Of a stretch of DNA of 64,000 bases, positions 19,238 to 56,027 are shown one piece after another (the stretch's first letter is position 1; each line of letters starts with the position of its first letter). The stretch lies in sequence record NC_048045.1; one strand, 5' to 3'. A program made the translations under genes and the position numbers. A model generated the notes under the pieces. That model was not told where the DNA came from and ran no database searches. It worked only from the letters and a program-made list of their open reading frames with translations.

Positions 19238-19254
19238 TGTCATGAATCATGACA
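19238..19254. promoter_or_regulatory. Perfect palindromic operator centred on GAATC
   Basis: TGTCATGA-A-TCATGACA. Confidence 0.7.
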
Positions 19255-19535
19255 CAGGATGTCGTGGCGCGCAACATTCGCGCATAAGAAGAGCCCCGCC
19301 GTCGTGATCGGCGGGGCTCGCTGCTGCTACAGGGAGAGAAACGTGCGGATCGGCCTCCTGGGTATTGGGCCGACCCGCGCGCGGGGATTACTTGAGCATC
19401 TGGGTCTCCTTCCGTGGTCTGTCATTTCTGGAGGACCCCGCAGGGCCTCTGCTTTTCCGATCCCCAAGCTAGAGCGGGGCGAAACGACCGTCAAGGGCAA
19501 AGTGTGTTGCCTCACGACTTTTCCTGCCGGCAAAT

Positions 19536-19575
19536 GTCGTGAATCTTGACAGAAGCCCGTTAACCATGCCATTTT
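19536..19575 (+). promoter_or_regulatory. Portal promoter with GTCGTGAATCTTGAC operator
   Basis: Motif 19536-19550; right arm is the -35 TTGACA. Confidence 0.75.
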
Positions 19576-19658
19576 CCGGCTCACCTGCCTCATCCGGCGG
19601 GCTTCCCACGTCAAACTTCGGGGGGATTCGTCCTCCCCGCTTCTTTCTCGGGCGCCGA

Positions 19659-21566
19659 ATGGCCGGTCAGACTCCGAACTCCACGAACATCTCGCGGGTC
19701 GCCCGCGCGACCTCGCAGGCGATCTATCTGGTCACCCATCCGGAGTACCAATACTGGCGCCCGGAGTGGACGAAGCTGCGCGACGTGATGGCGGGCCAGC
19801 GCGAGATCAAGCGCAAGGCCGAGGCCTACCTGCCGGCCATGAAGGGCGCGGACGGCGACGACTACGCCATCTACCTCCAGCGCGCGACCTTCTTCAACAT
19901 GCTCGCCCAGACCCGCGACGGCATGACCGGGATGGTCTTCCGCCGCGACCCGATCATCAAGAACCTGCCGCCCAAGTTCAAGGACGCGGTGCGCCGCTTC
20001 GCCAAGGACGGCTCCTCGCACGCCACCTTCGCCAAGGCCGTGCTCTCCGAGCAGGCCGGCGTCGGGCGCTTTGGCGTCCTGGTCGACGTCGCCGACAGCC
20101 CGGTCCGGGGTGCGCCCCCGTCCAGCTTCGCCGTCGGCTACTCGGCCGAGAACATCCTCGACTGGGACGAGGTCGTCGACATGGGCGGCTTCTACGTCCC
20201 CAGCCGCGTCCTGCTGCGCGAATTCGTGCGCGACCTGCGCTGGAAGACCGACATCGAGCCCCTGACCACCGCCCAGGCCCGCAAGGCGCGTGCGGCGGCT
20301 CTGGCCTCGGGCGGCTCCAGCAGCCCGATGGTCCGTCAGACCGCCCGCACCCTGGGCGGCTACAGCTACATCACCGTCTACCGCGAACTCAAGCTCGAAG
20401 AGATCGAGTGGCCGTCCGGCGAGGTCAAGCCCGCCTACGTCCAGTACCTCTACGAAGAGGACCCCGAGAGCCGGCCGATCGCGCGCATCGTCCCGAACGT
20501 CCGGGGCGAGCCGCTCGACTTCATCCCCTTCAAGTTCTTCGGCGCCTCGGGCAACACCGCCGACGTCGAAAAGCCGCCGCTGCTCGACATCTGCGATCTG
20601 AACCTGTCGCACTACCGCACCTACGCCGAACTCGAATACGGCCGCCTGTTCACGGCCCTGCCCGTCTACTACGCGCCGGGCACCGACAGCGAGGGCACGG
20701 GCGAATACCACATCGGCCCGAACATGGTCTGGGAAGTCCCTCAGGGCTCCGAGCCCGGCATCCTGGAGTACACCGGCCAAGGGCTGAAAGCCCTCGAAAC
20801 GGCGCTCAACGACAAGGAGCGGCAGATCGCCGCGATCGGCGGCCGGATGATGCCGGGCGCCTCCAAGTCGGTCTCCGAGAGCAACAACCAGACCGTCCTT
20901 CGCGAGGCCAACGAGCAGTCGCTGCTCCTCAACATCATCCAGGCCTGCGAGGGCGGGATGACCGACATCGTGCGCTGGTGGCTGATGTGGCGCGACGTGC
21001 CGCTGGTCGAGACCCAGGACCTGCGCTACGAGGTCAACACCGACTTCCTGTCGACGCCGATCGGCGCGCGCGAGATGCGCGCCATCCAGCTTATGGCCAA
21101 CGACGGCCTGCTGCCCGACCCGGTCTTCTACGAGTACATGCGCAAGGCCGAGGTCATCTCGTCCGACATGACCTTCGAGGAATTCCAGTCCCTGCGCGCC
21201 GACGAGAACTCGTTCCTCAACAACCCCGACGCCCAGGCGCGTCAGCGCGGCTTCACCAACCGTGGCCAGGAACTGGAACAATCGCGCATGGCGCGCGAAG
21301 CCGACTTCACCCAGCAGAAGATCGACATCCAGGAACGCAGCGTCGCGGTCCAGGAAGGCCACGCCGAGGTCGCCCACTCGGTTGGCTCGACCTCGGTCTC
21401 CGCCTCGCGCAAGCTGGGCGATCCCGAGCAGGCCAAGCCGGCGCAGGCCGAGCAAGCCCAGATCGCCAACCAGCGCAAGCAGATCGCCAACGCGGCCAAG
21501 ACTCCTGCCCAGCCGGCGGCTCCGGCCGCGCCCGCTTCGCAGCCGGGCAACCGGCGTCCGACCTGA
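19659..21566 (+). CDS. Portal protein (DUF4055/SPP1-like)
   Basis: 635 aa; YLPAM..DDYAIYLQRATFFN, PPLLDICDLNLSHY motifs; position in the phiCbK-like gene order. Confidence 0.85.
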   Translation: MAGQTPNSTNISRVARATSQAIYLVTHPEYQYWRPEWTKLRDVMAGQREIKRKAEAYLPAMKGADGDDYAIYLQRATFFNMLAQTRDGMTGMVFRRDPIIKNLPPKFKDAVRRFAKDGSSHATFAKAVLSEQAGVGRFGVLVDVADSPVRGAPPSSFAVGYSAENILDWDEVVDMGGFYVPSRVLLREFVRDLRWKTDIEPLTTAQARKARAAALASGGSSSPMVRQTARTLGGYSYITVYRELKLEEIEWPSGEVKPAYVQYLYEEDPESRPIARIVPNVRGEPLDFIPFKFFGASGNTADVEKPPLLDICDLNLSHYRTYAELEYGRLFTALPVYYAPGTDSEGTGEYHIGPNMVWEVPQGSEPGILEYTGQGLKALETALNDKERQIAAIGGRMMPGASKSVSESNNQTVLREANEQSLLLNIIQACEGGMTDIVRWWLMWRDVPLVETQDLRYEVNTDFLSTPIGAREMRAIQLMANDGLLPDPVFYEYMRKAEVISSDMTFEEFQSLRADENSFLNNPDAQARQRGFTNRGQELEQSRMAREADFTQQKIDIQERSVAVQEGHAEVAHSVGSTSVSASRKLGDPEQAKPAQAEQAQIANQRKQIANAAKTPAQPAAPAAPASQPGNRRPT

Positions 21567-21592
21567 TGACCTTCCAGCAGCCCTGAGTTCCG

Positions 21593-21775
21593 ATGCCGCG
21601 TTCCTACGATTCCTTCGAAGACCTGATCCATGACCTCGATCACGAGGGGATCGTCGACGCCGACGGCATTGCCGAACTGGACGACGAGGACCTGTCCTTG
21701 CTCGCCCCGCCGGTGATCCGCAAGGCGCCCGCCGCGCCTCCCAAGAAGCGCGGTCGGCCCAAGAAGGCGGCCTGA
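21593..21775 (+). CDS. Small acidic protein with AT-hook-like tail
   Basis: KKRGRPKK at the C-terminus. Confidence 0.65.
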   Translation: MPRSYDSFEDLIHDLDHEGIVDADGIAELDDEDLSLLAPPVIRKAPAAPPKKRGRPKKAA

Positions 21776-22179
21776 TGCGTCACGCCACCGCCCGCTGGAG
21801 CGTCTTGACCGTTCGCCTGGACGGCATCGCCCACTGGATCGACGAGGTCGACGTCTCGATCATCGACCTGGAGACGGGCGAGCATCCGCGCGGCGAGGAT
21901 GGCGAGTTCCTCCCAATCCTGTCGGCGACGCCCCAGACCATCAACCTCTACAACGGCCACGCCATCGACGGCCGCTACGAGATCACCTCCAGCCTTCCCG
22001 AGGCCCCCATGTCCGAGCCCGTCCTCATCGGCGACCCCGCCGCCGAGCGCACCATAGAAGTCCTGGCCATGCACCCCGACGAGGCGGCCCAGTTCGTCCC
22101 CACGCCCGAGCAGGGCGCCAAGATCGCGGCGGGCGACATGATCATCGGCATCATCCGCTACGGTGCGCCGCCGTCGTGA
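21775..22179 (+). CDS. Hypothetical protein
   Basis: TGATG coupling. Confidence 0.7.
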   Translation: MRHATARWSVLTVRLDGIAHWIDEVDVSIIDLETGEHPRGEDGEFLPILSATPQTINLYNGHAIDGRYEITSSLPEAPMSEPVLIGDPAAERTIEVLAMHPDEAAQFVPTPEQGAKIAAGDMIIGIIRYGAPPS

Positions 22180-22235
22180 ATCTTGACACCCAGAGTCAGG
22201 TGTGATGACATCGCCCTCGTTAACCACGAGGGCTT
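22173..22235 (+). promoter_or_regulatory. Promoter with tandem 15-bp operators
   Basis: GTCGTGAATCTTGAC 22173-22187 and GTCAGGTGTGATGAC 22195-22209. Confidence 0.75.
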
Positions 22236-22239
22236 TTTC

Positions 22240-22500
22240 ATGACCACCGCCGTCACCATCGCCGCTGCGGGCCACAACATCATCGTCTACCTGAACGACG
22301 CCTACGAGCCCTCGAACGGCGGCGAACTGGTCGAGACCGAGACCATCGAGTTCGTGACCAAGAACACCCAGCGCACCTTCCACGTCCACCAGACGCGCGA
22401 CATCTACATCACCGAAGTCCGCGACGGCGAGACCGACCTCAACGACCTGATCGAAAGCGGCGCCTTCGAGGCCGCGCGCCAGTACATCCAGGCCGGCTAA
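22240..22500 (+). CDS. Hypothetical protein
   Basis: GAGG SD. Confidence 0.7.
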   Translation: MTTAVTIAAAGHNIIVYLNDAYEPSNGGELVETETIEFVTKNTQRTFHVHQTRDIYITEVRDGETDLNDLIESGAFEAARQYIQAG

Positions 22501-22686
22501 CGTTCTACGGCGCCCTAATTGCCAGCCGGCGCATACGGACACGGGCTGGATAAATCGGCAGCGATGCGAAGCGCTTGGGGCGAGGGGCCACGGGCGTGAG
22601 TCAAAGGAGGGGGCGCCGCTGGGTCACCGGCCCGGTCCTTTCACCTCCCAATCGCCGCAAGTCCGCACCCTTCCAAGAGGCCCTTG

Positions 22687-23313
22687 ATGAGCGACGATTT
22701 CGACAAGCAGTTCGACGACAAGGTCCGCGCGCGCGACGCCGGCATCGTCGAAGAGCAGCTTCGCCTTGCCCTCCCCCTGCCGCCCGAGCCGCCCAAAATC
22801 GAGCATCTGCTGGAACTGGCCAAGCGGATCAACCTGACCGCCGACCACGAGATCATCTTCGAGGTCGACGAGCCCTATGAGGCCGAGGCTGAGCAGGCCG
22901 TGGCGATCGAGACCGCCCAGCGCCGCGACGGCAAGCCGGACGCGGTGTTCAACGAGCAGGACTTCCTCGACCAGATCAAGGACCGTGCCGGCAAGCCGTT
23001 CGGCTGGCCCTACTTCAAGCCGATGCCGGACGGTAAGGGCTACGTCTACGCGCGCGAGTTGGCCGAGACAGCGGCGCCCAAGATCACGATTTCGGTCTAC
23101 CTCAACAATGGCACGGTGCGCGAATACGACGTCGCCGACGCGGCGACCGCGCGCGAGCACGCCTTCGAGATCATCCAGACCGGCTACCGCAGCGTCGACC
23201 AGGATCAGCCCAACGTGCTCGTCCACTGGCCGCCGCACGAGATCAAGAAGGTCAAGCTGACCGGCAGCGAACCCTTCAAGTCCAACTATTTCGACCGCGT
23301 CCGGGGGACCTGA
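22687..23313 (+). CDS. Hypothetical protein
   Basis: GAGG SD; 208 aa. Confidence 0.75.
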   Translation: MSDDFDKQFDDKVRARDAGIVEEQLRLALPLPPEPPKIEHLLELAKRINLTADHEIIFEVDEPYEAEAEQAVAIETAQRRDGKPDAVFNEQDFLDQIKDRAGKPFGWPYFKPMPDGKGYVYARELAETAAPKITISVYLNNGTVREYDVADAATAREHAFEIIQTGYRSVDQDQPNVLVHWPPHEIKKVKLTGSEPFKSNYFDRVRGT

Positions 23314-23316
23314 CCC

Positions 23317-23709
23317 ATGCCTACCATCCAATTTGATTCGCTGGACCTGATGCCCGAGGGCCTGCGCAGCTACGCCAAGGCCGCCGGCGCCTACGAGGGC
23401 GAAGCCGTTTCGGTCGATGTCGTGCCGGCCGTCTGCCTCGACGAATTCCGCGACAACGCCATCCGCCTGGGCAAGGAGCGCGACGAGCTTGCCGGGCGCC
23501 TCGCCCAGGCTAACCTCAACGCTCAGGCCCTGGCCCAGGAACTCGTCGAGGCCGACGAGCGCATCCAGGTCCTCACGGCCGATCTGGAAGTGAGCGCCCG
23601 GCAGGCGACGCTCCTGGCGGAATACATCGACGCCAACATCGATCTCAAAGCCGCGCGTAGTCATCTCGACGCGGTAATTACGATCGTCGACGCCTGCATC
23701 GAGGCCTGA
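23317..23709 (+). CDS. Short paralog of the scaffold protein N-terminus
   Basis: MPTIQFDSLDLMPEGLRSYAK..DEFRDNAIRLGKERD aligns by eye with 30052 MPVLTYDTLDMVPEGLREVAK..DEFRDNNIKISKERD. Confidence 0.75.
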   Translation: MPTIQFDSLDLMPEGLRSYAKAAGAYEGEAVSVDVVPAVCLDEFRDNAIRLGKERDELAGRLAQANLNAQALAQELVEADERIQVLTADLEVSARQATLLAEYIDANIDLKAARSHLDAVITIVDACIEA

Positions 23710-23711
23710 TC

Positions 23712-24077
23712 ATGTGCGTCGTCTCCGCCGTCATGGATCACGGCCGCCAGCAGTGGCCTCACCTCATGGAGCCCAAGTTCTGGCCGCTCCCCACGCCGGT
23801 CGTCCCGGCGCATCCGGGAATGAAGATTTGGCCGCCGCAGGAGCCCAAGCTCCCGACCAAGGCCGAGATCGAAGCGTTCCTGGCGCTCTACAAGGCCGCC
23901 CAGGAGTACGACGCCAAGACCGGCCAGCCGCACTGCGAGGACCCCGAGAAGATCAAGCTCCTCGACGCCATCACCCGGCTCGCCGACCGCCTGGAGGCGA
24001 TCGAAAAGCGTCTTGGTGCCCAGGATGCCGCAGAGGCCGAGGACGCGGCGGCGATCGCCGCCTCCGTCAAGACGTGA
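23712..24077 (+). CDS. Hypothetical protein
   Basis: GAGG SD. Confidence 0.75.
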   Translation: MCVVSAVMDHGRQQWPHLMEPKFWPLPTPVVPAHPGMKIWPPQEPKLPTKAEIEAFLALYKAAQEYDAKTGQPHCEDPEKIKLLDAITRLADRLEAIEKRLGAQDAAEAEDAAAIAASVKT

Positions 24078-24322
24078 GCGTCTTCGACCTGCCGGCCGAC
24101 GGCTTTGACCGCCGCAAGCCGCTGTTTCGCGTCTTCAACATCGACGGCGAGACCCAGTGGTGGACGGTGATCGCCGCGCTCAACGCGCCCGGCCGCCGCT
24201 GCACCCCGGAGGAAGAAGCGCGGATCGTCGAGCGCCTCCAGGCCCAGCCTTGGGCCGACAAGTTCTGGACCTGCTACCACCTGAGCGGCAAGGCCACCAT
24301 CTACGAAAGCACCCCAGAATGA
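24074..24322 (+). CDS. Hypothetical protein
   Basis: GTGA overlap. Confidence 0.65.
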   Translation: MSVFDLPADGFDRRKPLFRVFNIDGETQWWTVIAALNAPGRRCTPEEEARIVERLQAQPWADKFWTCYHLSGKATIYESTPE

Positions 24323-24603
24323 AGCTCACCGTCAGCGGCCAGGACATGAGCGGCGAGGCCACCGTCTACCTGATGCTGGTCCCGCGCGCGGGCGTGCGGC
24401 TGCAAAACGATGTGCCCGTGGCCCTCACCTTCGAGGCCTTACCGGGCGCGGCCGGTGACGTGCGCCTGGACGCCATGACCGAGGTCCATCTGTCGGACGC
24501 TCCGCCGCCGGGCACGCTCGTCTTCTTGCCGGGCGAGGCCGAGAAGGTCTTCTTCATCAACACCGCCGGCCCGTGGAAGCTGACGTTCCGGGAGACGCCG
24601 TGA
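24319..24603 (+). CDS. Hypothetical protein
   Basis: ATGA overlap. Confidence 0.65.
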   Translation: MKLTVSGQDMSGEATVYLMLVPRAGVRLQNDVPVALTFEALPGAAGDVRLDAMTEVHLSDAPPPGTLVFLPGEAEKVFFINTAGPWKLTFRETP

Positions 24604-24839
24604 ACGCCCACCAGCACATGCCCGACAACATGCCGTTCGGCCTGAAGGGATTTCCCAAGGTCGAGCGGATCGACGGCGTGCGCAACATCGTCTATCTGAC
24701 CTGCGGCGACAGCGTGCCGATCGTTCACTACATGGCGGGCGGCGAGGAGTGCGGCAATCCGCTGCGGGCTGACACCCTGGTCGCCGGCCCCTATCAGGAC
24801 AAGTGGCTGGTCCTGCCGATCCCGGACGGCGCCCTGTGA
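24600..24839 (+). CDS. Hypothetical protein
   Basis: GTGA overlap. Confidence 0.65.
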   Translation: MNAHQHMPDNMPFGLKGFPKVERIDGVRNIVYLTCGDSVPIVHYMAGGEECGNPLRADTLVAGPYQDKWLVLPIPDGAL

Positions 24840-25078
24840 CCCGGCCGCTCAACGCCACCGAGGTTCTCTGCGACGCCTTCCGCGACCTTTTGACCAAGGG
24901 CTTCTACGTCACCGACGAGCACGGCGAGATTCATGGGCCGGACACCCCGCTCGGCGATGCGGCCCTGGCGGCGACCAAGGCGTGGCGCGGCGACCTCTGG
25001 AAGGCCTTCCGCCCGATCGACGACAGCATGTGCCCCGTGCGGGTCCACGAGCGCGAAGCGGCCAAGCGCGCGGGCTGA
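24836..25078 (+). CDS. Hypothetical protein
   Basis: GTGA overlap. Confidence 0.65.
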   Translation: MTRPLNATEVLCDAFRDLLTKGFYVTDEHGEIHGPDTPLGDAALAATKAWRGDLWKAFRPIDDSMCPVRVHEREAAKRAG

Positions 25079-25091
25079 GCATGGCCGGATG

Positions 25092-25185
25092 TGTCCGGCA
25101 AATGTCCAGCAATCTGCGCCACTCTTTGAATTCATTGAGCTTTTAGCACCGACCGACGTCCAGCAAATGTCCGGCAATGTCCGGA
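25092..25185. repeat. TGTCC(G/A)GCAA iteron-like repeats flanking an AT-rich core
   Basis: Copies at 25092, 25103, 25157, 25168; partial copy at 25178. Confidence 0.8.
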
Positions 25186-25233
25186 TTAAGGTTTGGCCGG
25201 ATGACCGGATCGGTGGCCGGACTCGAAAGTGGT

Positions 25234-25295
25234 GTCGTGATTCTTGACACCCCATGTCGTCTGTGGTGACATCCCCTCGTTAACCACGACGGGCT
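25234..25295 (+). promoter_or_regulatory. Promoter with tandem 15-bp operators
   Basis: GTCGTGATTCTTGAC 25234-25248 and GTCGTCTGTGGTGAC 25256-25270. Confidence 0.75.
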
Positions 25296-25300
25296 CCCCG

Positions 25301-25642
25301 ATGATCCGCCTCACCCAGACCAAGCACATGAGCAACGAGGCCTCCAGCGACCAGCGCTGGTTCCTCGACAGCACCCTGCGCTTTGAGGTGCATCCGGTCC
25401 GCAACGAGGCTCAGGTCAAGGCTTGGCCGGGCGCCAAGGCGGCGGTCGTGATCAACGGCGAGGCCCACTACGTCGACGAGACGCCCGAGCAGGTCATGAC
25501 CCTGTTGAAGGTCTCTCGCTTCCCGCACGCCTACCGCTTCCAATCCGAACCCGGTCATCTGATCGCGCCGGACGATCTGATCTGGATCGGCTGCGACGCC
25601 GAGGGCGGCCTGGAATTTGGCTTCACCGAAATCAAGGTCTGA
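25301..25642 (+). CDS. Hypothetical protein
   Basis: First ORF after the promoter. Confidence 0.7.
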   Translation: MIRLTQTKHMSNEASSDQRWFLDSTLRFEVHPVRNEAQVKAWPGAKAAVVINGEAHYVDETPEQVMTLLKVSRFPHAYRFQSEPGHLIAPDDLIWIGCDAEGGLEFGFTEIKV

Positions 25643-25646
25643 GCCG

Positions 25647-29891: not shown

Positions 29892-29906
29892 GTCAAGCGC
29901 GAAAAA

Positions 29907-29945
29907 GTCGTGAATCTTGACATTCCACGAATTTTTTGCTAGAAC
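29907..29945 (+). promoter_or_regulatory. Scaffold promoter with GANTC operator
   Basis: GTCGTGAATCTTGACA-N15-GCTAGAAC, a Caulobacter sigma70-like -10. Confidence 0.8.
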
Positions 29946-32597: not shown

Positions 32598-32632
32598 AAA
32601 CCCCGGACCTCGCGGTCCGGGGTTTTTCTTTG
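32598..32632 (+). terminator. Intrinsic terminator
   Basis: AAACCCCGGACC/GGTCCGGGGTTT plus TTCTTT. Confidence 0.85.
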
Positions 32633-32658
32633 GACCCAGCCCGGAGGCCCTCCGGACT

Positions 32659-32700
32659 GTCGTGAATCTTGACACAACGCGTGTTTCATGCCAGAAGTCA
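32659..32700 (+). promoter_or_regulatory. Promoter with GANTC operator
   Basis: GTCGTGAATCTTGACA-N15-GCCAGAAG. Confidence 0.75.
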
Positions 32701-46832: not shown

Positions 46833-46934
46833 CGGGGAGAACCTGATGGGGCTTTGTATCGCCGGAGGGCGAGGGACGGGTCGCTCCCCGGCGGCCCACC
46901 CGCTTCCTATAGACCGGCTCGCCTCGGCCCGCAA

Positions 46935-46980
46935 GACGTGAATCTTGACATGGTGGAAGATCGAGGTTAACCTACGCGCT
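46935..46980 (+). promoter_or_regulatory. Promoter with GANTC operator
   Basis: GACGTGAATCTTGACA-N15-GTTAACCT. Confidence 0.7.
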
Positions 46981-47555: not shown

Positions 47556-47850
47556 TCGTGGTGAGGTGAGAACGCCCTCCTCATGCACCGCTTCGGCGGT
47601 AAAGTAGGCTCCGGCCGAAGAGATGCGGGAACAGGGGACCCCGCCACCACGAACGAAGTGCGCCCCAGGTGCGCCTCTGACCGAGAAAGCCCGCTGGCCG
47701 TGGGTGAAGCGTAGGGTCAAGCGTCTGGGTCCCCGTCCTCCAGGACCGGCGAAGGCCATATGCGCCGAATTCCTGGTCAGGATCGCATGAGGGGAGCGCT
47801 GGCGCCGGCCCAGCAGGGGAGGGTTAAAAGCCCAGCCGGCATTTTTCTTC
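47556..47850 (+). ncRNA. Candidate structured RNA
   Basis: TCGTGGTG/CACCACGA closing helix, UUCG hairpin, terminator-like end; family not recognised. Confidence 0.4.
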
Positions 47851-48476: not shown

Positions 48477-48527
48477 TTGACATCCGTTGGGAGTTGTGAG
48501 AGCTTATGGACTGTCACGGATCACGAC
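48477..48527 (+). promoter_or_regulatory. Promoter of the Pro-to-Ser tRNA unit, with a 15-bp operator variant at the start site
   Basis: TTGACA-N15-GAGAGCTT; GTCACGGATCACGAC 48513-48527. Confidence 0.65.
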
Positions 48528-48598
48528 ACTCCTCGGAGTGCAAAAGCGTGATCCTTCGTTATTCACGGCCGCCAGCGGGTGGCCAGTCGAGAGTTGTC

Positions 48599-49089: not shown

Positions 49090-49094
49090 GCAAC

Positions 49095-49288: not shown

Positions 49289-49293
49289 ACAAT

Positions 49294-49383
49294 GCACAAG
49301 TGACCCGAGCGGCGAAGGGCGTCGACTTTTAATCGACTAGGCGTCCAGCCTCACCGAGGGTTCGAGTCCCTCCTTGTGCTCCA
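49294..49383 (+). tRNA. tRNA-Lys(TTT) with long variable arm
   Basis: CT-TTT-AA loop; AGGC/GCCT V-arm; 90 nt. Confidence 0.8.
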
Positions 49384-49386
49384 TGT

Positions 49387-49473
49387 GCGAATGTGGCGGA
49401 ACTGGTAGACGCGCCGGCCTCAGGTGCCGGTACCCTTCGGGGCGTGTGGGTTCGAGTCCCACCTTTCGTACCA
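49387..49473 (+). tRNA. tRNA-Leu(CAG)
   Basis: CT-CAG-GT loop, long V-arm. Confidence 0.9.
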
Positions 49474-49480
49474 ACGACAT

Positions 49481-49568
49481 GCCTTGCTGGCGGAAGTGGT
49501 AGACGCACTGTTCTCAAAAAGCAGGCCGGGCGACCGGGCTCTGGGTTCGATCCCCAGGTGAGGCACCA
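49481..49568 (+). tRNA. tRNA-Leu(CAA)
   Basis: CT-CAA-AA loop, long V-arm. Confidence 0.9.
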
Positions 49569-49575
49569 AGACTGA

Positions 49576-49663
49576 TGCGAAGTGGCGGAAACTGGTAGAC
49601 GCACCGGCATGAGAGGCCGGCGCCCTTCGGGGCGTGAGGGTTCGAGTCCCTTCTTCGCGACCA
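49576..49663 (+). tRNA. tRNA-Leu(GAG)
   Basis: AT-GAG-AG loop, long V-arm. Confidence 0.85.
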
Positions 49664-49665
49664 AT

Positions 49666-49731
49666 GTCCCGATCGGGAAGATTCCAGGCGGCGCGGCGCG
49701 CGCGACACCGGAATCGTCCCGATCGGGAAGA
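49666..49731. repeat. 16-bp direct repeat GTCCCGATCGGGAAGA with palindromic core
   Basis: Copies at 49666 and 49716; GATTCC/GGAATC stem between them. Confidence 0.85.
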
Positions 49732-49743
49732 CGACGAGATTAT

Positions 49744-49814
49744 GCTGATCGCCGCTGGGCGGGGAGCGGGTTGTGTCCCCGCTAGGCACGGTTCGATCCC
49801 GTGGGTCAGTACCA
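49744..49814 (+). tRNA. tRNA-His(GTG), compact D-arm, A73
   Basis: TT-GTG-TC loop; 7/5 stems; A73 as in alphaproteobacterial tRNA-His. Confidence 0.65.
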
Positions 49815-49819
49815 GATAC

Positions 49820-49890
49820 GGGGTATGCGCAGGGCGCAGCCATCCTTTGCAAGGACGGCGGGGTGGGTTCGAGTCCCACATACTCCACCA
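49820..49890 (+). tRNA. tRNA-Ala(TGC), compact D-arm
   Basis: G3:U70 pair, TT-TGC-AA loop. Confidence 0.8.
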
Positions 49891-49894
49891 ACAT

Positions 49895-49984
49895 GGAAGG
49901 TCAACCGGACAGGCGCGCCGGGACTGCCTCGAAAGCAGATCGCACTCTCCGGGGTGTGGGGATCGAGACCTCGGCCTTCCTCCA
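49895..49984 (+). tRNA. tRNA-Ser(CGA), 8/4 fold
   Basis: CT-CGA-AA; GGAAGGTC/GGCCTTCC acceptor. Confidence 0.85.
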
Positions 49985-49988
49985 ACAT

Positions 49989-50078
49989 GGTGAGCGAACG
50001 GGACAGGCGTGCCCGGTCCGCCTGGAAAGCGCGACGCACTCTCCGGGGTGTGGGATTCGAGTTCTCCGCTCACCGCCA
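49989..50078 (+). tRNA. tRNA-Ser(GGA), 8/4 fold
   Basis: CT-GGA-AA; GGTGAGCG/CGCTCACC acceptor. Confidence 0.85.
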
Positions 50079-50082
50079 ACAT

Positions 50083-50172
50083 GGTAGGCGAACCGGACAG
50101 GCGTGCCGGCGCCGTTTGCTAAACGAGCGGCACTCTCCGGGGTGTGGGATTCAAGCTCTCCGCCTACCGCCA
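50083..50172 (+). tRNA. tRNA-Ser(GCT), 8/4 fold
   Basis: TT-GCT-AA; GGTAGGCG/CGCCTACC acceptor. Confidence 0.85.
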
Positions 50173-50214
50173 TTTTGATGTTGACGCCGGCCCCTGCCGA
50201 TGTCATACGTCACG

Positions 50215-50460
50215 ACAGAGCGAACGCCCTTGGCCGGGTTGGTGGATGTGCCGGTTGCATCACGCCCCGTCGAGCCCTAGTAGCTCTTGAGTGGAGTTTT
50301 CCGCCTCCCTCCCTAACAAGGAGGCGGACCCCAACATCGCGATCCAGTGATCGTCGGCGACGGGCGCCGTTAGAGCCCCCTTGCGCGCGGAAACGCTGCG
50401 GAGGGGATCGTCCCGACCACATTCGCTCGCCGGCAAAAATCTTCGCCGGCGTTAACTTTT
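50215..50460 (+). ncRNA. Candidate ~215-nt structured RNA with its own promoter and terminator
   Basis: TTGACG 50181; GAGCGAA/TTCGCTC closing helix; GCCGGC hairpin plus T-run. Confidence 0.45.
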
Positions 50461-50464
50461 CTTC

Positions 50465-50500
50465 TTGACCTTTGAAAGGTCCTGGTGTAGTTTCCCCGTC
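50465..50500 (+). promoter_or_regulatory. Promoter of the Tyr-to-Arg tRNA unit
   Basis: TTGACC-N15-TGTAGTTT; ATG 7 nt later suggests a leaderless mRNA. Confidence 0.7.
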
Positions 50501-50596
50501 ATGAGCAAGTCGTACCGCCAATTCGTGCAGATTCAGGTCGTCCGGAATTTCCGGGCGGGCCGTTCGCGCATGGATGATGGCGGGACCTTTATCTAG
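50501..50596 (+). CDS. Putative attenuator leader peptide MSKSYRQFVQIQVVRNFRAGRSRMDDGGTFI
   Basis: Codons 5-18 are all read by the downstream tRNAs; contains an 18-nt antiterminator strand. Confidence 0.85.
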   Translation: MSKSYRQFVQIQVVRNFRAGRSRMDDGGTFI

Positions 50597-50622
50597 GTCC
50601 AGACACCTCAACCCAATTCGCG

Positions 50623-50660
50623 AAAGGCCCGCCTGGACACCCAGGCGGGCCTTTTTCTTT
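50623..50660 (+). terminator. Attenuator terminator
   Basis: AAAGGCCCGCCTGG-ACAC-CCAGGCGGGCCTTT plus TTCTTT. Confidence 0.9.
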
Positions 50661-50717
50661 TCCGTTTCGCTGATCCGAGGAGATCGCAGATGAACAACGG
50701 GGGCTAGTCCTCCACAT

Positions 50718-50802
50718 GGATGCTTAAAGCTGGAGGGCTCCAGCCGGGGGCTGTAAACCCCCTCTCTTCGGAGGAGTGGTTCGATCCCACAAGCATCCAC
50801 CA
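50718..50802 (+). tRNA. tRNA-Tyr(GTA), 8/4-type fold
   Basis: CT-GTA-AA; GGATGCTT/AAGCATCC acceptor; GTGG/CCAC T-stem. Confidence 0.75.
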
Positions 50803-50803
50803 T

Positions 50804-50878
50804 GGTCATGTAGCTGAGACAGATTAGCGCCGGCGTGAAATCCCGGAGACGAGGATGCGAGCACCTCCTAGACCACCA
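50804..50878 (+). tRNA. tRNA-Phe(GAA), degenerate T-loop
   Basis: GT-GAA-AT loop, CCA. Confidence 0.65.
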
Positions 50879-50883
50879 ACAAC

Positions 50884-50959
50884 GCCCGATGAGCCAGATG
50901 GGAAGGCACCGCTTTGACATGGCGGCATTGAGAAGGTTCGATTCCTTCATCAGGCACCA
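50884..50959 (+). tRNA. tRNA-Val(GAC)
   Basis: TT-GAC-AT loop. Confidence 0.85.
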
Positions 50960-50964
50960 ACCAC

Positions 50965-51040
50965 GCAAGTGTAGCTCAGTTGGTAGAGCAGCGGACCGAT
51001 AATCCGCCCGTCCCTGGTTCGAGTCCAGGCATTTGCACCA
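50965..51040 (+). tRNA. tRNA-Ile(GAT)
   Basis: CC-GAT-AA loop. Confidence 0.85.
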
Positions 51041-51047
51041 TTTCTGA

Positions 51048-51122
51048 TGTGGCATAGCTCAGGGGTAGAGCGTCCGCTTGATAAGCGGGAGGTCGTGGGT
51101 TCGAAACCCCCTGCCACTACCA
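51048..51122 (+). tRNA. tRNA-Ile(GAT)
   Basis: TT-GAT-AA loop. Confidence 0.85.
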
Positions 51123-51153
51123 ATTCCAGGCCGGCGGAGAGAGCCGGTCCTGT

Positions 51154-51227
51154 AGGCGATTAGCTCAATGGTAGAGCGGGGGTGCCACAAACCTCAGGCG
51201 TAGGTTCGATTCCTACATCGCCCACCA
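51154..51227 (+). tRNA. tRNA-Val(CAC)
   Basis: GC-CAC-AA loop (C33 atypical). Confidence 0.75.
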
Positions 51228-51232
51228 ATTGT

Positions 51233-51306
51233 TGAGGGTTCGTCTAATGGTAGGACGCCTGGGTCTGGTCCAGGTAATCTAGGTTCGAGTCCTAGCTCCT
51301 CATCCA
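51233..51306 (+). tRNA. tRNA-Gln(CTG)
   Basis: GT-CTG-GT loop; U1-A72. Confidence 0.85.
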
Positions 51307-51312
51307 AGTTGT

Positions 51313-51386
51313 TCTCGGGTGGTCTAATGGTAGGACGGCTGGTTTTGGTCCAGCAGGTTGGGGTTCGATTCCTTGGCCGAGAGCCA
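51313..51386 (+). tRNA. tRNA-Gln(TTG)
   Basis: TT-TTG-GT loop; U1-A72, G73. Confidence 0.85.
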
Positions 51387-51403
51387 ACTGCTTTTGAGTT
51401 TAT

Positions 51404-51478
51404 TCCAGTCAATGCACAAGGTGTGCAGCGGCACTGTTAATGCCTGTGAGCCCGGTTCGATTCCGGGGTCTGGAGCCA
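51404..51478 (+). tRNA. tRNA-Asn(GTT)
   Basis: CT-GTT-AA loop; G73. Confidence 0.85.
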
Positions 51479-51503
51479 ACACGCCGGCCTAGGCCGGTCA
51501 TGC

Positions 51504-51586
51504 GCCCTGGTAACCGAGGGGGATTACGAATCCCTTAGTCGTAGCAGGAGTTGAAAAGGGTGGTTCGAATCCACTCCAGGGTGCCA
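51504..51586 (+). tRNA. tRNA-Arg(ACG)-like, D-arm absent, long variable region
   Basis: TT-ACG-AA loop; acceptor, T-arm and CCA intact. Confidence 0.55.
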
Positions 51587-51593
51587 AATCTAT

Positions 51594-51676
51594 AGCGCGC
51601 AGGCCGAGCAGGATCATCGTCAGGCGTCGCCCTCCGAAGGCGAAGAGGCCCGGTTCGAGTCCGGGGCGCGCTGCCA
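51594..51676 (+). tRNA. tRNA-Arg(CCG), expanded D region
   Basis: CT-CCG-AA loop; 7/5 stems; CCA. Confidence 0.7.
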
Positions 51677-51679
51677 CAT

Positions 51680-51757
51680 GCGCGGGTAGCTCAATGGAGC
51701 CAGAGCAGCCGTCTTCTACACGGTGGGTTGGGGGTTCGAGTCCCTCCCCGCGTGCCA
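51680..51757 (+). tRNA. tRNA-Arg(TCT)
   Basis: CT-TCT-AC loop; CCA. Confidence 0.8.
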
Positions 51758-51789
51758 AACTTGACGGGCGATGCCGAATCGCTCAACGT

Positions 51790-52080
51790 CGACCCTGGCT
51801 CTCGGTGGGCCACGATTGCACGTCGCCGGTGCCCTGGCCGTACACCCAGGGAGCAGCCCGGCGGCGTTCCAACACGGTTTCTGGACGATCTTCGAACGCG
51901 GCTTGCCGTGGAGGGGTGCTGGATGGGGCCGAGGTAGGAGGAACCATCGAGCATCTCCTCATCCTGGACTGGGCCTCCTGGGGGCTCCTCCGGGTCAAAC
52001 AGGGCCTGACCCGACCCCGGAGATGCGCCGACCTTGATCACCCAGGATCGCTGGGTCGGTGGAAAGGGTCTGAAATTTTT
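51790..52080 (+). ncRNA. Candidate ~280-nt structured RNA
   Basis: TTGACG 51761; GACCCT/AGGGTC closing helix; several internal hairpins; T-run after. Confidence 0.4.
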
Positions 52081-52124
52081 CTGGCTCTTATGTGTTGACA
52101 CGCATTTCAGAGCCGGCTACAACC

Positions 52125-52260
52125 CTCCTCGTAGAGCGGCGCTGGGGCCAGGAGGCCCCGTCGTTGAGCCTCTGCGTTGTCGTCAGAAACGGCCCGCCGG
52201 CTTCCCGCCGCGCGGGCCGTTTCGTCATGGGCGTCATGCGACCTTGAGTCCACCGTGGGT
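52125..52260 (+). ncRNA. Candidate small RNA or structured leader
   Basis: TTGACA-N15-GCTACAAC promoter at 52095; 12-bp stem 52186-52223. Confidence 0.35.
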
Positions 52261-52263
52261 AGT

Positions 52264-52305
52264 GTCGTGAATCTTGACTTTCGACCACCTTTCCGGTAGC
52301 TTCCC
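52264..52305 (+). promoter_or_regulatory. Promoter with GANTC operator
   Basis: GTCGTGAATCTTGAC 52264-52278. Confidence 0.7.
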
Positions 52306-52347
52306 CTTCATCACCAACGCTCATAAGTCGGGGACTAGAGAGCCGCA

Positions 52348-52746
52348 ATGTCGCAAGACCACACCGGCTCCGCAACGCAGGGCCAAGAACACATCTTCCG
52401 TAAGCTGGATGAGCTTGGCGCAATGCACATGCGTACCCGCGAGGACATGGCCGAGGTCAAGGAGAAGGTGAAGACCATCGCCTCCTCTCAGGAGCGCTTT
52501 GAGCGCGACGTCTGGCGTGAAATGGATATTCGCCACACCGAGACCAAGCAGGCCCTGGCCGATATCAAGGATCACACCAACGAGCGGATCAGCGAGATCG
52601 AGTCCAAGGTGAACACCATCCGCGAGGAGCGGATCGCCGAAAAAGCCCAATGGCGCGGCCCCGAAAAGGTCATCGCCGCCATCGTCGCCCTGGCGGGCGG
52701 CGTCACGGCGATCGGCGTGCTCTGGAGCATCTTCAAGCCGCACTAA
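52348..52746 (+). CDS. Coiled-coil protein with C-terminal TM (holin/XhlA-like candidate)
   Basis: Long coiled coil then VIAAIVALAGGVTAIGVLWSIF. Confidence 0.6.
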   Translation: MSQDHTGSATQGQEHIFRKLDELGAMHMRTREDMAEVKEKVKTIASSQERFERDVWREMDIRHTETKQALADIKDHTNERISEIESKVNTIREERIAEKAQWRGPEKVIAAIVALAGGVTAIGVLWSIFKPH

Positions 52747-52780
52747 TCCTACAGTCAAGCTTGTTCCCCTGCGGCCAGAA

Positions 52781-52825
52781 GTCGCGCTTCTTGACACCCC
52801 TGGTCGGCCCGAGCTAACCATATGC
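52781..52825 (+). promoter_or_regulatory. Promoter with an operator variant lacking GANTC
   Basis: GTCGCGCTTCTTGACA-N16-GCTAACCA. Confidence 0.6.
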
Positions 52826-52849
52826 CATCTGTTCCTGGGGAGTTCCTAG

Positions 52850-53071
52850 ATGGCTGCTGCGCTTACCCTCGTCTCGCGTGAGACGGATTATTCGACCACC
52901 ACGGAAATCGATCCGGACGCGGCGCATCAGCGCCTCATCCTGGTCCTGAACACCGCCGCAGAAGCGGGCCTTGGTGACATGACGTTGGAAGTCAAAGAGG
53001 AGATCGAGGCCCTGCTCAAGCAGGCGTCTATCGAACTCTCGAATTGCCGGATCGTGGGGGGAGTTCCTTAA
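52850..53071 (+). CDS. Hypothetical protein
   Basis: GGGAG SD. Confidence 0.7.
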   Translation: MAAALTLVSRETDYSTTTEIDPDAAHQRLILVLNTAAEAGLGDMTLEVKEEIEALLKQASIELSNCRIVGGVP

Positions 53072-53093
53072 TCGCCATCCCAGAGGGAGCGAC

Positions 53094-53960
53094 GTGTCCG
53101 AGTCTTCCGAATTCAACCCGCTCGACGAAACCCAGTTCCCTCCTCGCCTCACCAAGGCGGCTGCGCGGCAAGCGCGGCGCCTGGAGAAAAGCCAGAAAAA
53201 GGACCCCACGGCGAACAAGCCGAACTACAAGGCGCTCGAAGCCAAGACTGAACGCCAGAAGCGCTACATCCAGGCGCTGAAGGCCGGCGAGAGCGCCATC
53301 GCTATCGGTGGGGCCGGCACGGGAAAGACCTACATCCCGTCCCGGCTCTTCGCCAAGAAGCTGATCGAAGGCAAGACCGAACGCCTGATCATCGCCCGCG
53401 TTACCGCCTCGCGGGCCAAACACGCCCTGGGCTTCCTGCCCGGCAAGCTCGAAGCCAAGCTGGCCCCCTGGCTGGTCCCGGTGATCGAGGGCGTCAAGGC
53501 GGAAATGAACGCCCAGACCTACACGCAGTTGCAAGAGGCCGGCAAGATCGAGTTCGCCTCCTTCGAGCACATGCGTGGCCGGACCTTCGGCGAGTGCTGC
53601 GTCCTCCTGGACGAGGCGCAGAACGCCGACTACAAGGACCTGAAGATGGTCCTGACCCGCTGGGGTGAAAACGCCCAGTACGCGGTCACCGGCGACGTCG
53701 ACCAGATCGACGTGGACGACTCCGGGCTGGACACGGTCATCGACATCGTCGAGGCCAACGACATCCCCATCCACGTCATTGAGTTCACCGACGAGGACGT
53801 CGTGCGCTCGCCCATGGCTAAGGCCTGGGTCAAGGCCTTCTCCGCCCATGAGGGCAAGGACGGCCGCCCCCGGCGCTTCCACCGCCCGGCTGTCAGGAAT
53901 CTTGACGCTTTGCCGGTGTTCATCGATAATGGCCATGTCACGAAATCCGTGGCATCGTGA
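53094..53960 (+). CDS. phoH: PhoH-like ATPase
   Basis: GGAGTGKT Walker A, LGFLPGKLEAKLAPW, EHMRGRTF, LLDEAQN, VTGDVDQID. Confidence 0.95.
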   Translation: MSESSEFNPLDETQFPPRLTKAAARQARRLEKSQKKDPTANKPNYKALEAKTERQKRYIQALKAGESAIAIGGAGTGKTYIPSRLFAKKLIEGKTERLIIARVTASRAKHALGFLPGKLEAKLAPWLVPVIEGVKAEMNAQTYTQLQEAGKIEFASFEHMRGRTFGECCVLLDEAQNADYKDLKMVLTRWGENAQYAVTGDVDQIDVDDSGLDTVIDIVEANDIPIHVIEFTDEDVVRSPMAKAWVKAFSAHEGKDGRPRRFHRPAVRNLDALPVFIDNGHVTKSVAS

Positions 53961-53962
53961 CA
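53892..53962 (+). promoter_or_regulatory. Neck-operon promoter inside the phoH 3' end, carrying both operator types
   Basis: GTCAGGAATCTTGAC 53892-53906; TGTCACG-N13-CGTGACA 53936-53962. Confidence 0.65.
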
Positions 53963-53977
53963 AAGACGTAGAGCACC

Positions 53978-54499
53978 ATGGCCTTCACCTTCGTTGTTGA
54001 GACCGGCGCCGGCGACCCGGCCGCGAACTCGTACTGCGATGTGCAGTTCGCGGACGACTACATCTACGCCAACGTCTACTCGAACACCGCCTGGGCCGCC
54101 TTGGAGGACGAGGACAAGGAACGCTTCCTTGTCCGCGCCTCCAAGTACCTGGACCGGACGGTGCAATGGGCGGGGGAGAAGGTCGAGGAGGACTCCGGCC
54201 TGCGCTGGCCGCGCGCCGGGGTCTACGATGTCGATGGCTTCCTGATCCCCAGCGATGCCATCCCGCAGCAGTTGATGGAGGCCACCGCCGAAATGGCGGC
54301 GGCGCTCCTCAACAACGACTGGACGTCGCCGCAGACCACGCGCGGCATGAAGGAAATCCAGGTCGACGTCATCGAACTGAAGTTCGACACCGAGGTCCAG
54401 CGCGGCTCGATGCCGGACATCGTCATGCAAATCCTGGAGGGCCTGGGCGTGGTCAAGACCGGCCAGCGCCCGGCCTTCAAGAAGATCATCCGTCACTAA
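53978..54499 (+). CDS. Head-tail connector/adaptor (DnaT-like domain type)
   Basis: FVVETGAG..ANSY..ADDY; LRWPR. Confidence 0.75.
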   Translation: MAFTFVVETGAGDPAANSYCDVQFADDYIYANVYSNTAWAALEDEDKERFLVRASKYLDRTVQWAGEKVEEDSGLRWPRAGVYDVDGFLIPSDAIPQQLMEATAEMAAALLNNDWTSPQTTRGMKEIQVDVIELKFDTEVQRGSMPDIVMQILEGLGVVKTGQRPAFKKIIRH

Positions 54500-54891
54500 T
54501 GGCGCTCGAAGCGTTCATCCAGTCGCAGGTCCTGGTCGCCTTCAACCAGCTTGACGACCTCTGCAAGCGCTGGACCTACGTCCAGCGTTCGGGAGTCGGG
54601 GTGCGCGACATCGAGAGCGGCAAGACGACCTATCCGACCACCGAGATCGACATCCCCAAGGCGGTCCGGGTGCGCTTCAAGAAGGACGAGAAGGACAAGA
54701 CCGGGCAGGTCCTGGTCGGCGAGAAGCTCCTCTTCCCGCGCGTCTATCTGCCCAAGGCCTTCGAAACCAAGACGTCCGACTACCTGATCGACGAAGCCGG
54801 CGTGGTCTGGGAGATCATGAGCGACCTGTCGGACCCGGCCAAGGCCGTGGCGATCCTCCAGGTGCGGTCCTCGCGGATCGTGACGCCGTGA
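54499..54891 (+). CDS. Putative head closure/neck protein
   Basis: Size and position in the neck cluster. Confidence 0.6.
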   Translation: MALEAFIQSQVLVAFNQLDDLCKRWTYVQRSGVGVRDIESGKTTYPTTEIDIPKAVRVRFKKDEKDKTGQVLVGEKLLFPRVYLPKAFETKTSDYLIDEAGVVWEIMSDLSDPAKAVAILQVRSSRIVTP

Positions 54892-55360
54892 AGGTTGGCG
54901 GCGCCAAGCTGAACTTCTACACCGACGGGAACCTGGAGGCGGCCTTCAAGCGCTTCTTCGCCACCGCCGAGAAGCGTTACGACGAGCGCGCCGACCGGCT
55001 GCTGATCCGGCTGAACGAATTGATCCTCTCGCGGACCCCGGTGTGGGAAGGCGATACGATCCACAACTGGCGCTGGTCCACCCGCGCGCCCGACATGCGT
55101 CACGAAGACCCGGTTGGGGCGTTGATCCCGGCCGGACGAGCGAGATGCCCCTGGGCACCGAACCTCGTCGCCATGCCAACGAGACCCGCCCCCGTCAATC
55201 GCTGGCCGGCGCTCTGCGCGCCAAGGAGCCGATCGACATCTACCTGACCAACACCGCCGAGAGCGCCGTTGATCTGGAATATGGCCTGCTGCCGACCAAG
55301 GCCCAGAGCCGTAACAGCATGGGGATGGTTCGAATCTCGGTTAAAGAGGTGTTCGGGTGA
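54888..55360 (+). CDS. Putative tail completion/neck protein (HK97 gp10-like), -1 shift at G4 55116-55119 (probable sequence error)
   Basis: RTPVWEG..NW and IYLTNTA..AVDLEYG motifs lie in different frames. Confidence 0.6.
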
Positions 55361-55431
55361 TCCCCGCGTTCATCATTCTGCCGCGCGTCTATCTCGCGGC
55401 GTGGCTTTCGTTCTGGCTCGGGGAGGACTAG
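55357..55431 (+). CDS. 24-aa hydrophobic peptide
   Basis: GTGA overlap; abuts the next ATG. Confidence 0.35.
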   Translation: MIPAFIILPRVYLAAWLSFWLGED

Positions 55432-55887
55432 ATGCTCGAACATGACATGCTCCGTCAAGTCCTGGAGCAGCAGGCGATCGCCGCCGCTGTCCTGGCCAGC
55501 CTCGACCTGAAGTTCGACAATTCCGAGTTCGTGCAGCCCGCCGACGGCCGCCATTGGGCCGAGTTTTGGCATCGCACCGGCGCGACCAAGGCCTGCGAGG
55601 TCGCCGGACCGAAGGGCTACGAAAAGACCGCCGGGCTGTTGCAGTTCACCCTAAAGGCTCCCGAGGAAGAGGGCAATGGCGCGATCATCCGCGCCGGCGG
55701 CCTCGTCAAGCGGGCACTGAACCGCAAGCAGTTGGTGATTCCGCCCGACGGCTGGGTCACGCTCGATCCGATCTCGGTCGACGCCCACGGCAAGCCGATC
55801 GACGGCTTCTTCAACGTCATCGTCTGGGCGACGTTCGATTTCTACCACCGCGATCCCGACGCGCCCGATCATTGGCTCCGGGGTTGA
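55432..55887 (+). CDS. Putative tail terminator protein
   Basis: GGAGG SD; directly upstream of the tail tube gene. Confidence 0.65.
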   Translation: MLEHDMLRQVLEQQAIAAAVLASLDLKFDNSEFVQPADGRHWAEFWHRTGATKACEVAGPKGYEKTAGLLQFTLKAPEEEGNGAIIRAGGLVKRALNRKQLVIPPDGWVTLDPISVDAHGKPIDGFFNVIVWATFDFYHRDPDAPDHWLRG

Positions 55888-55911
55888 CGGCAGCGCTTCA
55901 CGGCTGCTATA

Positions 55912-56027
55912 GTCGTGAATCTTGACATTCCGCGAAGTCTAGGGTAGGTTCACCACACTTGCGATGCAGGGCCGGGTCGGCGCGCTCGCTACCCTTCCTT
56001 TTGTCACAAAACCCTGGATTGGTGACC
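55912..56027 (+). promoter_or_regulatory. Tail tube promoter with both operator types
   Basis: GTCGTGAATCTTGAC 55912-55926; TGTCACA-AAACCCTGGATT-GGTGAC 56002-56026. Confidence 0.7.

Follow-up and report, generated by a model that had tools for sequence, protein, structure and literature searches.

A dyad operator half-site joined to the -35 box in predicted non-early promoters of Caulobacter phage CcrBL10

Introduction

The first 64,000 bases of the genome of Caulobacter phage CcrBL10 (NC_048045.1, 220,934 base pairs, bp) carry a short motif repeated in front of the portal, scaffold/capsid, tail tube and several other operons. This stretch, called the window below, is identical to genome bases 1-64000 both in letters and in coordinates. 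CcrBL10 is a siphophage (subfamily Dolichocephalovirinae) of the phiCbK-like group, whose members serve as standard tools in research on the Caulobacter cell cycle. An earlier note on this DNA described the motif as a 15-bp palindromic operator centred on GANTC, the methylation site of the host enzyme CcrM, and proposed that it serves as a methylation-sensitive switch of late genes. No paper describing the 15-mer or the promoters of phiCbK-like phages was found in our literature search.

The window was compared with the remainder of the CcrBL10 genome, with bases 1-125,000 of phiCbK and with parts of the Colossus, CcrBL9, CcrPW, Bajun and Kikimora genomes. Genome-wide counts of genes downstream of the sites use existing annotation.

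Repeated motif and predicted promoters

A motif scan of the window recovered every site listed in the earlier note at its position. The 15-mer at 19239 is a perfect palindrome. The sites at 19536, 22173, 25234, 29907, 32659, 52264, 53892 and 55912 match the degenerate 15-mer pattern exactly, the one at 46935 has one mismatch, and those at 48513 (read on the minus strand), 50202 and 52781 are variants lacking GANTC. When up to one mismatch is allowed, the 15-mer gives 21 strand matches in the window versus 0.82 expected (standard deviation 1.28, maximum 6) from 100 dinucleotide-preserving shuffles of the same sequence. Since GANTC itself is depleted in the window (129 occurrences versus 299 expected), the motif is not a by-product of GANTC abundance.

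TTGAC does form the right arm in the nine sites from 19536 on, and a -10-like zone is located about 17 bp further. In aligned copies, GTCGTGAATC is usually preceded by T and is followed by TTGAC and A; after a spacer of 17 bp comes a -10 zone that is only loosely defined. The palindrome is real, but the 15-mer is only the core of a 17-mer which has T before and A after it. Nor do the sites constitute a single class: 19239, 48513 and 50202 are full dyads without a consensus -35 box and have to be treated separately from the copies fused to a -35 box, which we call hybrids. The range 19238-55926 to which the motif had been assigned does contain these sites, but the family extends beyond it and beyond the window.

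A census of the whole CcrBL10 genome has found about 23 hybrid copies. Eleven are within the window; outside it, hybrids are located at 65420, 71568, 77324, 79446, 85827, 86782, 92902, 100179, 102276, 107998, 114188, 116933 and 205747. They are confined to 19.5-117 kilobases (kb) and 205.7 kb, with none in 1-19 kb or 120-205 kb. Register and orientation are invariant across the copies, and a same-strand annotated gene starts 39-298 bp downstream in 22 of the 23. TTGAC is likewise present in 22 of 23 (the exception is CTGAC at 86782), and the next base is A in most copies; the -35 consensus printed by the promoter scan tool is TTGACA. This E. coli-type scan gave no hits, which is explained by -10 boxes that differ here from the E. 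coli consensus. The -10 zone of the hybrids is heterogeneous, and the full -10 score is reached by two of 22.

The overall identity of CcrBL10 and phiCbK is about 84%. In phiCbK, the 15-mer is found exact at the orthologous places while its flanks drift. Hybrids of phiCbK are located at 19453, 22396, 25477, 30465 and 33212, among others. The identical fraction over 17 orthologous pairs is 0.98 for the 17-mer, 0.92 for the -10 zone, 0.77 for the spacer and 0.47 for the upstream flank. The 17-mer of the predicted portal promoter (19535-19551) is the same in phiCbK and Bajun, again with drifting flanks. These two islands of conservation, spaced as in a promoter, support promoter function, and so does placement directly after a strong terminator, as for the site at 32659 (terminator 32598-32625). 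We infer from this anatomy that the hybrid sites act as promoters, all start sites referred to below being predicted ones.

Operons headed by hybrids include those for the portal, scaffold/capsid, adaptor, tail tube, tail and fibre proteins and a transfer RNA (tRNA) block. Hybrids also head the endolysin, terminase block, ribonucleotide reductase, helicase and methyltransferase-to-DNA-polymerase operons. These promoters had been called late in the earlier note, but replication, nucleotide, lysis and terminase operons belong here too. The hybrid motif heads all non-early operons, not late ones alone.

The regions devoid of hybrids carry instead a second promoter class, which comprises about 26 copies at 115-201 kb of the genome, with one window copy near 52095. 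In this class, GTG precedes an identical -35 box, a strong -10 box resembling TAGAAG is located at 17-18 bp, and a conserved 10-base leader containing an operator half-site is followed by a strong ribosome-binding site. In many copies, TGGCG is found some 10 bp upstream or, mirrored, within the spacer. Presumably, this is the early class.

Multi-copy contigs in a scan of IMG/VR were limited to CcrBL10, Rogue and Karma. Scanning bacterial genomes with the exact 15-mer gave scattered single chance matches among the matches listed, which is uninformative as far as host promoters are concerned.

Family of dyad operators

The idealised dyad consists of arms TGTCGTG and CACGACA separated by a 3-base gap, and the hybrid 17-mer pairs at six of the eight mirror positions. 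Hexamer counting was uninformative about extra half-sites near promoters, and a dyad scan was needed instead. It has found 22 sites in the CcrBL10 genome at two mismatches or fewer, versus 0.85 in shuffles, and 55 versus 7.9 at three or fewer. The enrichment is tied to the 3-base gap: among gaps of 0-9 bases, the 22 sites compare with 0-6 at any other gap. Twelve of these 22 are not hybrids, including 19238, 19260, 48512 and 50201 in the window. Another of the twelve, at 96911, has one mismatch and is intergenic, ahead of the genes for the cytosine methyltransferase and the polymerase.

The distribution of distances between sites has its peak at exactly 22 bp, with seven such pairs in CcrBL10, eight in phiCbK and none in 20 shuffles; the window contains two of them (19238/19260 and 25233/25255). 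Partner sites are located either about 22 bp upstream of a hybrid, with the centre near -60, or 22 bp downstream, with the centre near -16, over the -10 zone. They retain the outer arms of the dyad and lack the central GANTC. Other full dyads (48512, 50201, 127153, 133319, 139736 and 155240) are found just after the -10 box of early-type or tRNA-region promoters. Early-class promoters contain a half-site at most.

Operator arms in related phages

Colossus and CcrPW, which infect the same host, share the architecture but have a different distal arm, GCCAG, followed by five variable A/T-rich bases and the -35 box. Colossus's own arms occur 12 times at a 5-base gap versus 0-4 times at other gaps, and in the full dyads of Colossus and CcrPW both arms are changed together. 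The CcrBL9 arm is GMCGC followed by a T-rich stretch, and GANTC is absent from the promoters of this phage. The Kikimora arm differs again, while Bajun has the CcrBL10 arm, so that GTCGT unites CcrBL10, phiCbK and Bajun. The outer T, G and C are universal across the lineages sampled.

Phages infecting one host differ in their arms, and the two arms change in step. The sites are therefore most likely read by a dimeric regulator that the phage itself encodes, rather than by a host factor such as CcrM, GcrA or CtrA. The earlier proposal of a dyad-symmetric operator overlapping the -35 boxes of structural-gene promoters is supported by the spacing-specific family of sites, their 22-bp tandem partners and their co-varying arms.

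Proposed composite promoter-operator and its readers

The best explanation of these data, to which we give somewhat better than even chances, is a composite promoter-operator read by a phage-encoded dimeric regulator of the helix-turn-helix type. The left ten bases of the motif would represent a single arm of the 17-bp dyad. With minimal changes, the second arm would have become, in about 23 copies, the consensus -35 box (TTGACA) of a promoter for the host housekeeping sigma factor, with the -10 zone 17 bp further on. Full dyads, which would lack promoter function, are placed over the -10/start region of other promoters or at 22 bp, i.e., two helical turns, from the hybrids, and the dimeric regulator may bind these sites cooperatively.

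Negative control appears to be the most likely mode of action. A dimer bound to the hybrid would compete with region 4 of sigma, and a partner dimer over the -10 zone would reinforce this effect. Competition is favoured because six of the eight right-arm bases are retained, including the TC that is absent from the early class. A close second would be activation of the lambda PRM type, in which the subunit on the left arm touches sigma; the invariant geometry and the weak -10 boxes speak for such assistance. Judging by their location, full dyads over -10/start regions, as well as partners over the -10 zones of hybrids, could only repress. We lean towards a negative sign of control, and hold this view loosely.

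The best candidate for this regulator is a CI-like protein of 264 residues encoded at 79811-80605 of the genome. It matches Pfam HTH_3 (2e-6) and the PHROG family of transcriptional repressors (1e-11), and its C-terminal region is LexA/CI-like, as judged by eye. Its orthologues span all genera of the subfamily, and no phage record outside the subfamily has one. The second candidate is a TgrL-like protein of the XRE family, which likewise occurs throughout the genera of the subfamily; published phiCbK data describe it as early and abundant.

A close parallel is provided by the OR and OL operators of lambdoid phages, bound by repressors of the CI/Cro type, which are 17-bp dyads present in tandem copies and overlapping -35 and -10 boxes. 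In this system, a site at one position (about -40) can activate while its neighbour over the -10 box represses. CcrBL10 sites are similarly 17-bp dyads with a central base pair, arranged in tandem about two helical turns apart and overlapping -35 and -10 boxes, and the candidate reader, like lambdoid CI, combines an N-terminal helix-turn-helix of the XRE type with a LexA/CI-like C-terminal domain. Unlike lambdoid operators, however, they are scattered over the approximately 220 kb of a phage considered lytic, and in more than 20 promoters the -35 box stands in place of a half-site. A single immunity region is absent, and with the centre of the dyad at about -38, a full dimer is expected to clash with sigma.

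Middle promoters of phage T4 offer another comparison. There, a phage element, the MotA box, is read together with the host primary sigma in the presence of AsiA; it takes the place of the -35 box, and region 4 of sigma is remodelled. Both systems define a temporal promoter class by a phage-specific element used with the host primary sigma, but CcrBL10 has a -35 box of perfect consensus, and its additional element is located directly upstream of this box.

Several points weigh against the composite promoter-operator. Replication genes are early and structural genes middle to late, according to the summary given in the phiCbK RNA sequencing study (PMC10688885); as one motif heads both groups, it cannot alone set their timing. 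Changes in the half-site are not cleanly followed by the recognition-helix residues of the CI-like protein: Bajun and CcrBL10 have a half-site in common, yet the Bajun protein differs at three of the likely contact positions. The gene of the CI-like protein belongs to a hybrid-driven operon, which fits feedback and does not fit a primary switch. Finally, compared with the other operator classes, the hybrids conserve GAATC more strictly (20 of 22, with A almost always in the middle), which the fusion of the half-site to the -35 box explains only in part.

The analysis yields a complete map of both predicted promoter classes, early and hybrid, together with a genome-wide network of operators whose half-sites differ between lineages and with named candidate regulators. 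It would provide a handle on the ordering of the programme in large phages considered lytic, on how they could persist quietly as episomes, as has been reported, and on the role of the phage GcrA homologue.

Alternative explanations

The motif might be a pure extended promoter without any operator. RNA polymerase would then read the ten upstream bases on its own, or through a monomeric phage factor bound to it such as a re-tuned GcrA homologue, at promoters with a weak -10 box. The invariant register and orientation of all copies fit this explanation, as do the -10 boxes, which are weak and heterogeneous in comparison with the early class. CcrBL10 encodes a GcrA homologue with a conserved sigma-binding domain and a diverged DNA-binding domain, and host GcrA is known to stimulate open-complex formation. 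An extended promoter leaves unexplained, however, the full dyads lacking a -35 box, their places over -10/start regions, the 22-bp pairs and the co-variation of the arms in Colossus, and the architecture also occurs in lineages without a GcrA homologue. We consider it unlikely.

Equally improbable, in our estimate, is a silencing network in which the CI-like protein, bound to co-oriented sites, keeps the genome quiet as an episome in a carrier state (pseudolysogeny) instead of timing lytic development. Its model would be the stoperators of Cluster A mycobacteriophages, which are described as asymmetric, bound by a monomer and blocking elongation (PMC9283540, PMC6550527). Like these numerous, oriented, repressor-bound sites spread across a phage genome, CcrBL10 sites are short, present in dozens of copies, mostly intergenic and oriented with transcription. 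They are lineage-specific as well, and stoperators, by the same accounts, co-evolve with their own repressor. The roughly 23 co-oriented intergenic hybrids, the dyads on other promoters and the subfamily-wide conservation of the CI-like protein suit such a network, and CbK- and Rogue-like phages have been reported to form episomal pseudolysogens. But the CcrBL10 family is dyad-symmetric, has tandem partners and carries promoter elements in its oriented copies, so it falls outside the published definition of stoperators. Every hybrid has a -35 box and a conserved -10 zone, and several head divergent units with no upstream transcription to stop. A further point against silencing is that early-class promoters have no more than a half-site. 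In the pseudolysogeny report, moreover, carriers stay sensitive to the phage in question, and it is suggested there that an immunity repressor is not produced. Some link of the operator network, as a composite promoter-operator system, to the reported episomal carrier state is possible by analogy.

Central GANTC

The remaining explanation extends the one put forward in the earlier note: the central GANTC would be methylated by CcrM and read by the host or phage GcrA, and the methylation state of newly replicated phage DNA would switch the late promoters. Several observations agree with it. GANTC is present in 20 of the 22 hybrids in spite of its overall depletion, and it would be within 40 bp of the predicted start for the housekeeping sigma, as in Caulobacter promoters controlled by GcrA and CcrM. 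The phage GcrA homologue (Pfam 2.7e-20) has a well-conserved sigma-binding domain (56 bits) with the zinc ligands retained. The clade with the exact motif (Poindexter- and Shapiroviruses and Bajun) coincides with the clade carrying this homologue, although this correlation amounts to a single evolutionary contrast. Host ccrM messenger RNA persists during phiCbK infection. In addition, gp295, the first gene of a hybrid-driven operon (genome 99463-100077, minus strand), codes for an annotated DNA methyltransferase of 204 residues, in which FAGNG is followed by an NPPY motif. It has a PHROG match and no match in Pfam, NCBIfam or PDB, and is likely, by its motifs, to be an N6-adenine methyltransferase.

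The details of the sites fit it poorly. Host GcrA prefers YGAKTCK, while the AGATTCA class ranks 32nd of 32 and such substitutes cut binding to the level of unmethylated DNA; GcrA boxes are found at -20 +/- 1, -30 +/- 2 or +5 to +30 and no further upstream, which was ascribed to linker length, and the protein acts as a monomer stimulating open-complex formation (PMC4647560, PMC5887438, PMC9976885). The phage flanks, TGAATCT, read AGATTCA on the other strand, so they fall into this last-ranked class and outside the YGAKTCK consensus. The hybrid GANTC is centred at about -38 from the predicted start and directly adjoins the -35 box on its upstream side in all copies. This is at the edge of the 40-bp limit used in the GcrA study and outside the known box positions. 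In the phage homologue, host residues N34, I37, K39 and H41 are replaced by S, C, M and D, i.e., four of the seven base- or methyl-reading residues are changed. A monomeric reader also leaves the dyad family and its tandem partners lacking GANTC without explanation.

Related phages point the same way. Relatives without GcrA share the architecture with few or no GANTC; in Colossus, for instance, it is present in two of five promoters. At the 19239 site, the outer arms are conserved in phiCbK and Bajun, where the central GANTC is absent. Taken together, the worst-ranked flanks, the position, the partners and the sister lineages make a switch operated by CcrM and GcrA very unlikely.

Under the preferred composite promoter-operator, the central GANTC is probably incidental to the design: it is spelled because the half-site ends in GA, and after a single central base comes the TC in front of the -35 box. 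Hybrids of all lineages sampled have this TC, apart from one in Colossus. The chance that GAATC is nevertheless a true methylation sensor seems slim to us. It would require that CcrM or the phage NPPY methyltransferase shift the competition between regulator and sigma, or that the re-tuned phage GcrA homologue read the site. In that case, the non-early programme would be coupled to the replication and methylation state of phage DNA and to the host cell cycle. As a caution, a GANTC near a promoter should not automatically be taken for a CcrM/GcrA signal.

The GcrA homologue of Bajun is longer (235 residues, 973-1680 of its stretch) and has two stretches matching Pfam GcrA, which suggests a duplicated N-terminal DNA-binding domain. 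CcrBL10 also encodes a C5-cytosine methyltransferase. The top over-represented 7-mers of the genome, relative to Markov expectation, are GCCAGGG/CCCTGGC (198 versus 97) and GCCTGGG/CCCAGGC (218 versus 134).

Individual sites and neighbouring features

Sites found in the window are listed in Table 1.

Table 1. Operator dyads and predicted hybrid promoters in the window (positions 1-64000 of CcrBL10)
Feature	Position	Strand	Remarks
Near-perfect 17-bp dyad, called perfect in the earlier note	19238..19254	none	16 bp from the start codon of a minus-strand peptidase gene; without consensus -35 box
Partner dyad, outer arms retained, without GANTC	19260..19276	none	Exactly 22 bp from 19238; orthologous phiCbK pair 19167/19189
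Weak dyad, three mismatches	19503..19519	none	32 bp upstream of the portal promoter; phiCbK counterpart at 22 bp (19430/19452)
Predicted hybrid promoter, portal operon	19535..19574	+	17-mer 19535-19551 = left operator arm and -35 box; -10 zone near 19567-19574
Predicted hybrid promoter ahead of gp045	22172..22211	+	Followed by a hairpin with U-tract, 22213-22233
Predicted hybrid promoter ahead of gp053, GATTC variant	25233..25272	+	Partner dyad 25255-25271 over the -10 zone; phiCbK pair 25476/25498
Predicted hybrid promoter, scaffold/capsid operon	29906..29945	+	Best -10 of the hybrid class
Predicted hybrid promoter ahead of gp067	32658..32697	+	Directly after strong terminator 32598-32625
Predicted hybrid promoter, one left-arm mismatch	46934..46973	+	Ahead of gp077 and the first tRNA block
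Full dyad without GANTC	48512..48528	none	At the start-site region of an ordinary -35/-10 pair, tRNA region
Full dyad without GANTC	50201..50217	none	Overlaps the -10 zone of a TTGACG promoter at 50181; identical 17-mer in phiCbK at 51057
Predicted hybrid promoter ahead of gp334	52263..52302	+	
Predicted hybrid promoter variant without GANTC	52780..52819	+	Ahead of a PhoH-like gene
Predicted hybrid promoter within the 3' end of the PhoH-like gene	53891..53930	+	Ahead of a head-tail adaptor gene
Predicted hybrid promoter, tail tube operon	55911..55950	+	

A strong minus-strand terminator-like hairpin (19291-19319) separates the portal promoter region from the peptidase gene. This leaves only about 68 bp for the peptidase gene's own promoter, and they are wholly covered by the two tandem dyads.

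Hairpins with the loop GTTAACCA are located immediately downstream of several hybrids: at 22213-22233 (plus strand), after 25234 and after genome position 107998. The first of them, with its U-tract, looks like a terminator or attenuator ahead of the first gene. We take the loop to resemble a CtrA half-site.

In the tRNA region, about 1 kb (49888-50883) has no annotated gene. This gap contains the promoter with its dyad (50181-50217), which is conserved in phiCbK, and a borderline match to an unannotated tRNA (50804-50875). Directly 3' of the tRNA-Gly genes, at 47556-47652 on the plus strand, there is a match to the Rfam skipping-rope RNA (RF02924; 48.6 bits, gathering score 36.7), which is unannotated in the GenBank record.

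The tail tube labels at 55907-57865 are probably an annotation error. The RefSeq major tail tube protein is a minus-strand open reading frame of 126 nucleotides (55907-56032) overlapping the hybrid promoter. The RefSeq minor tail protein is encoded by a 1.8-kb plus-strand gene (56033-57865), the phiCbK orthologue of which is annotated as major tail tube protein.

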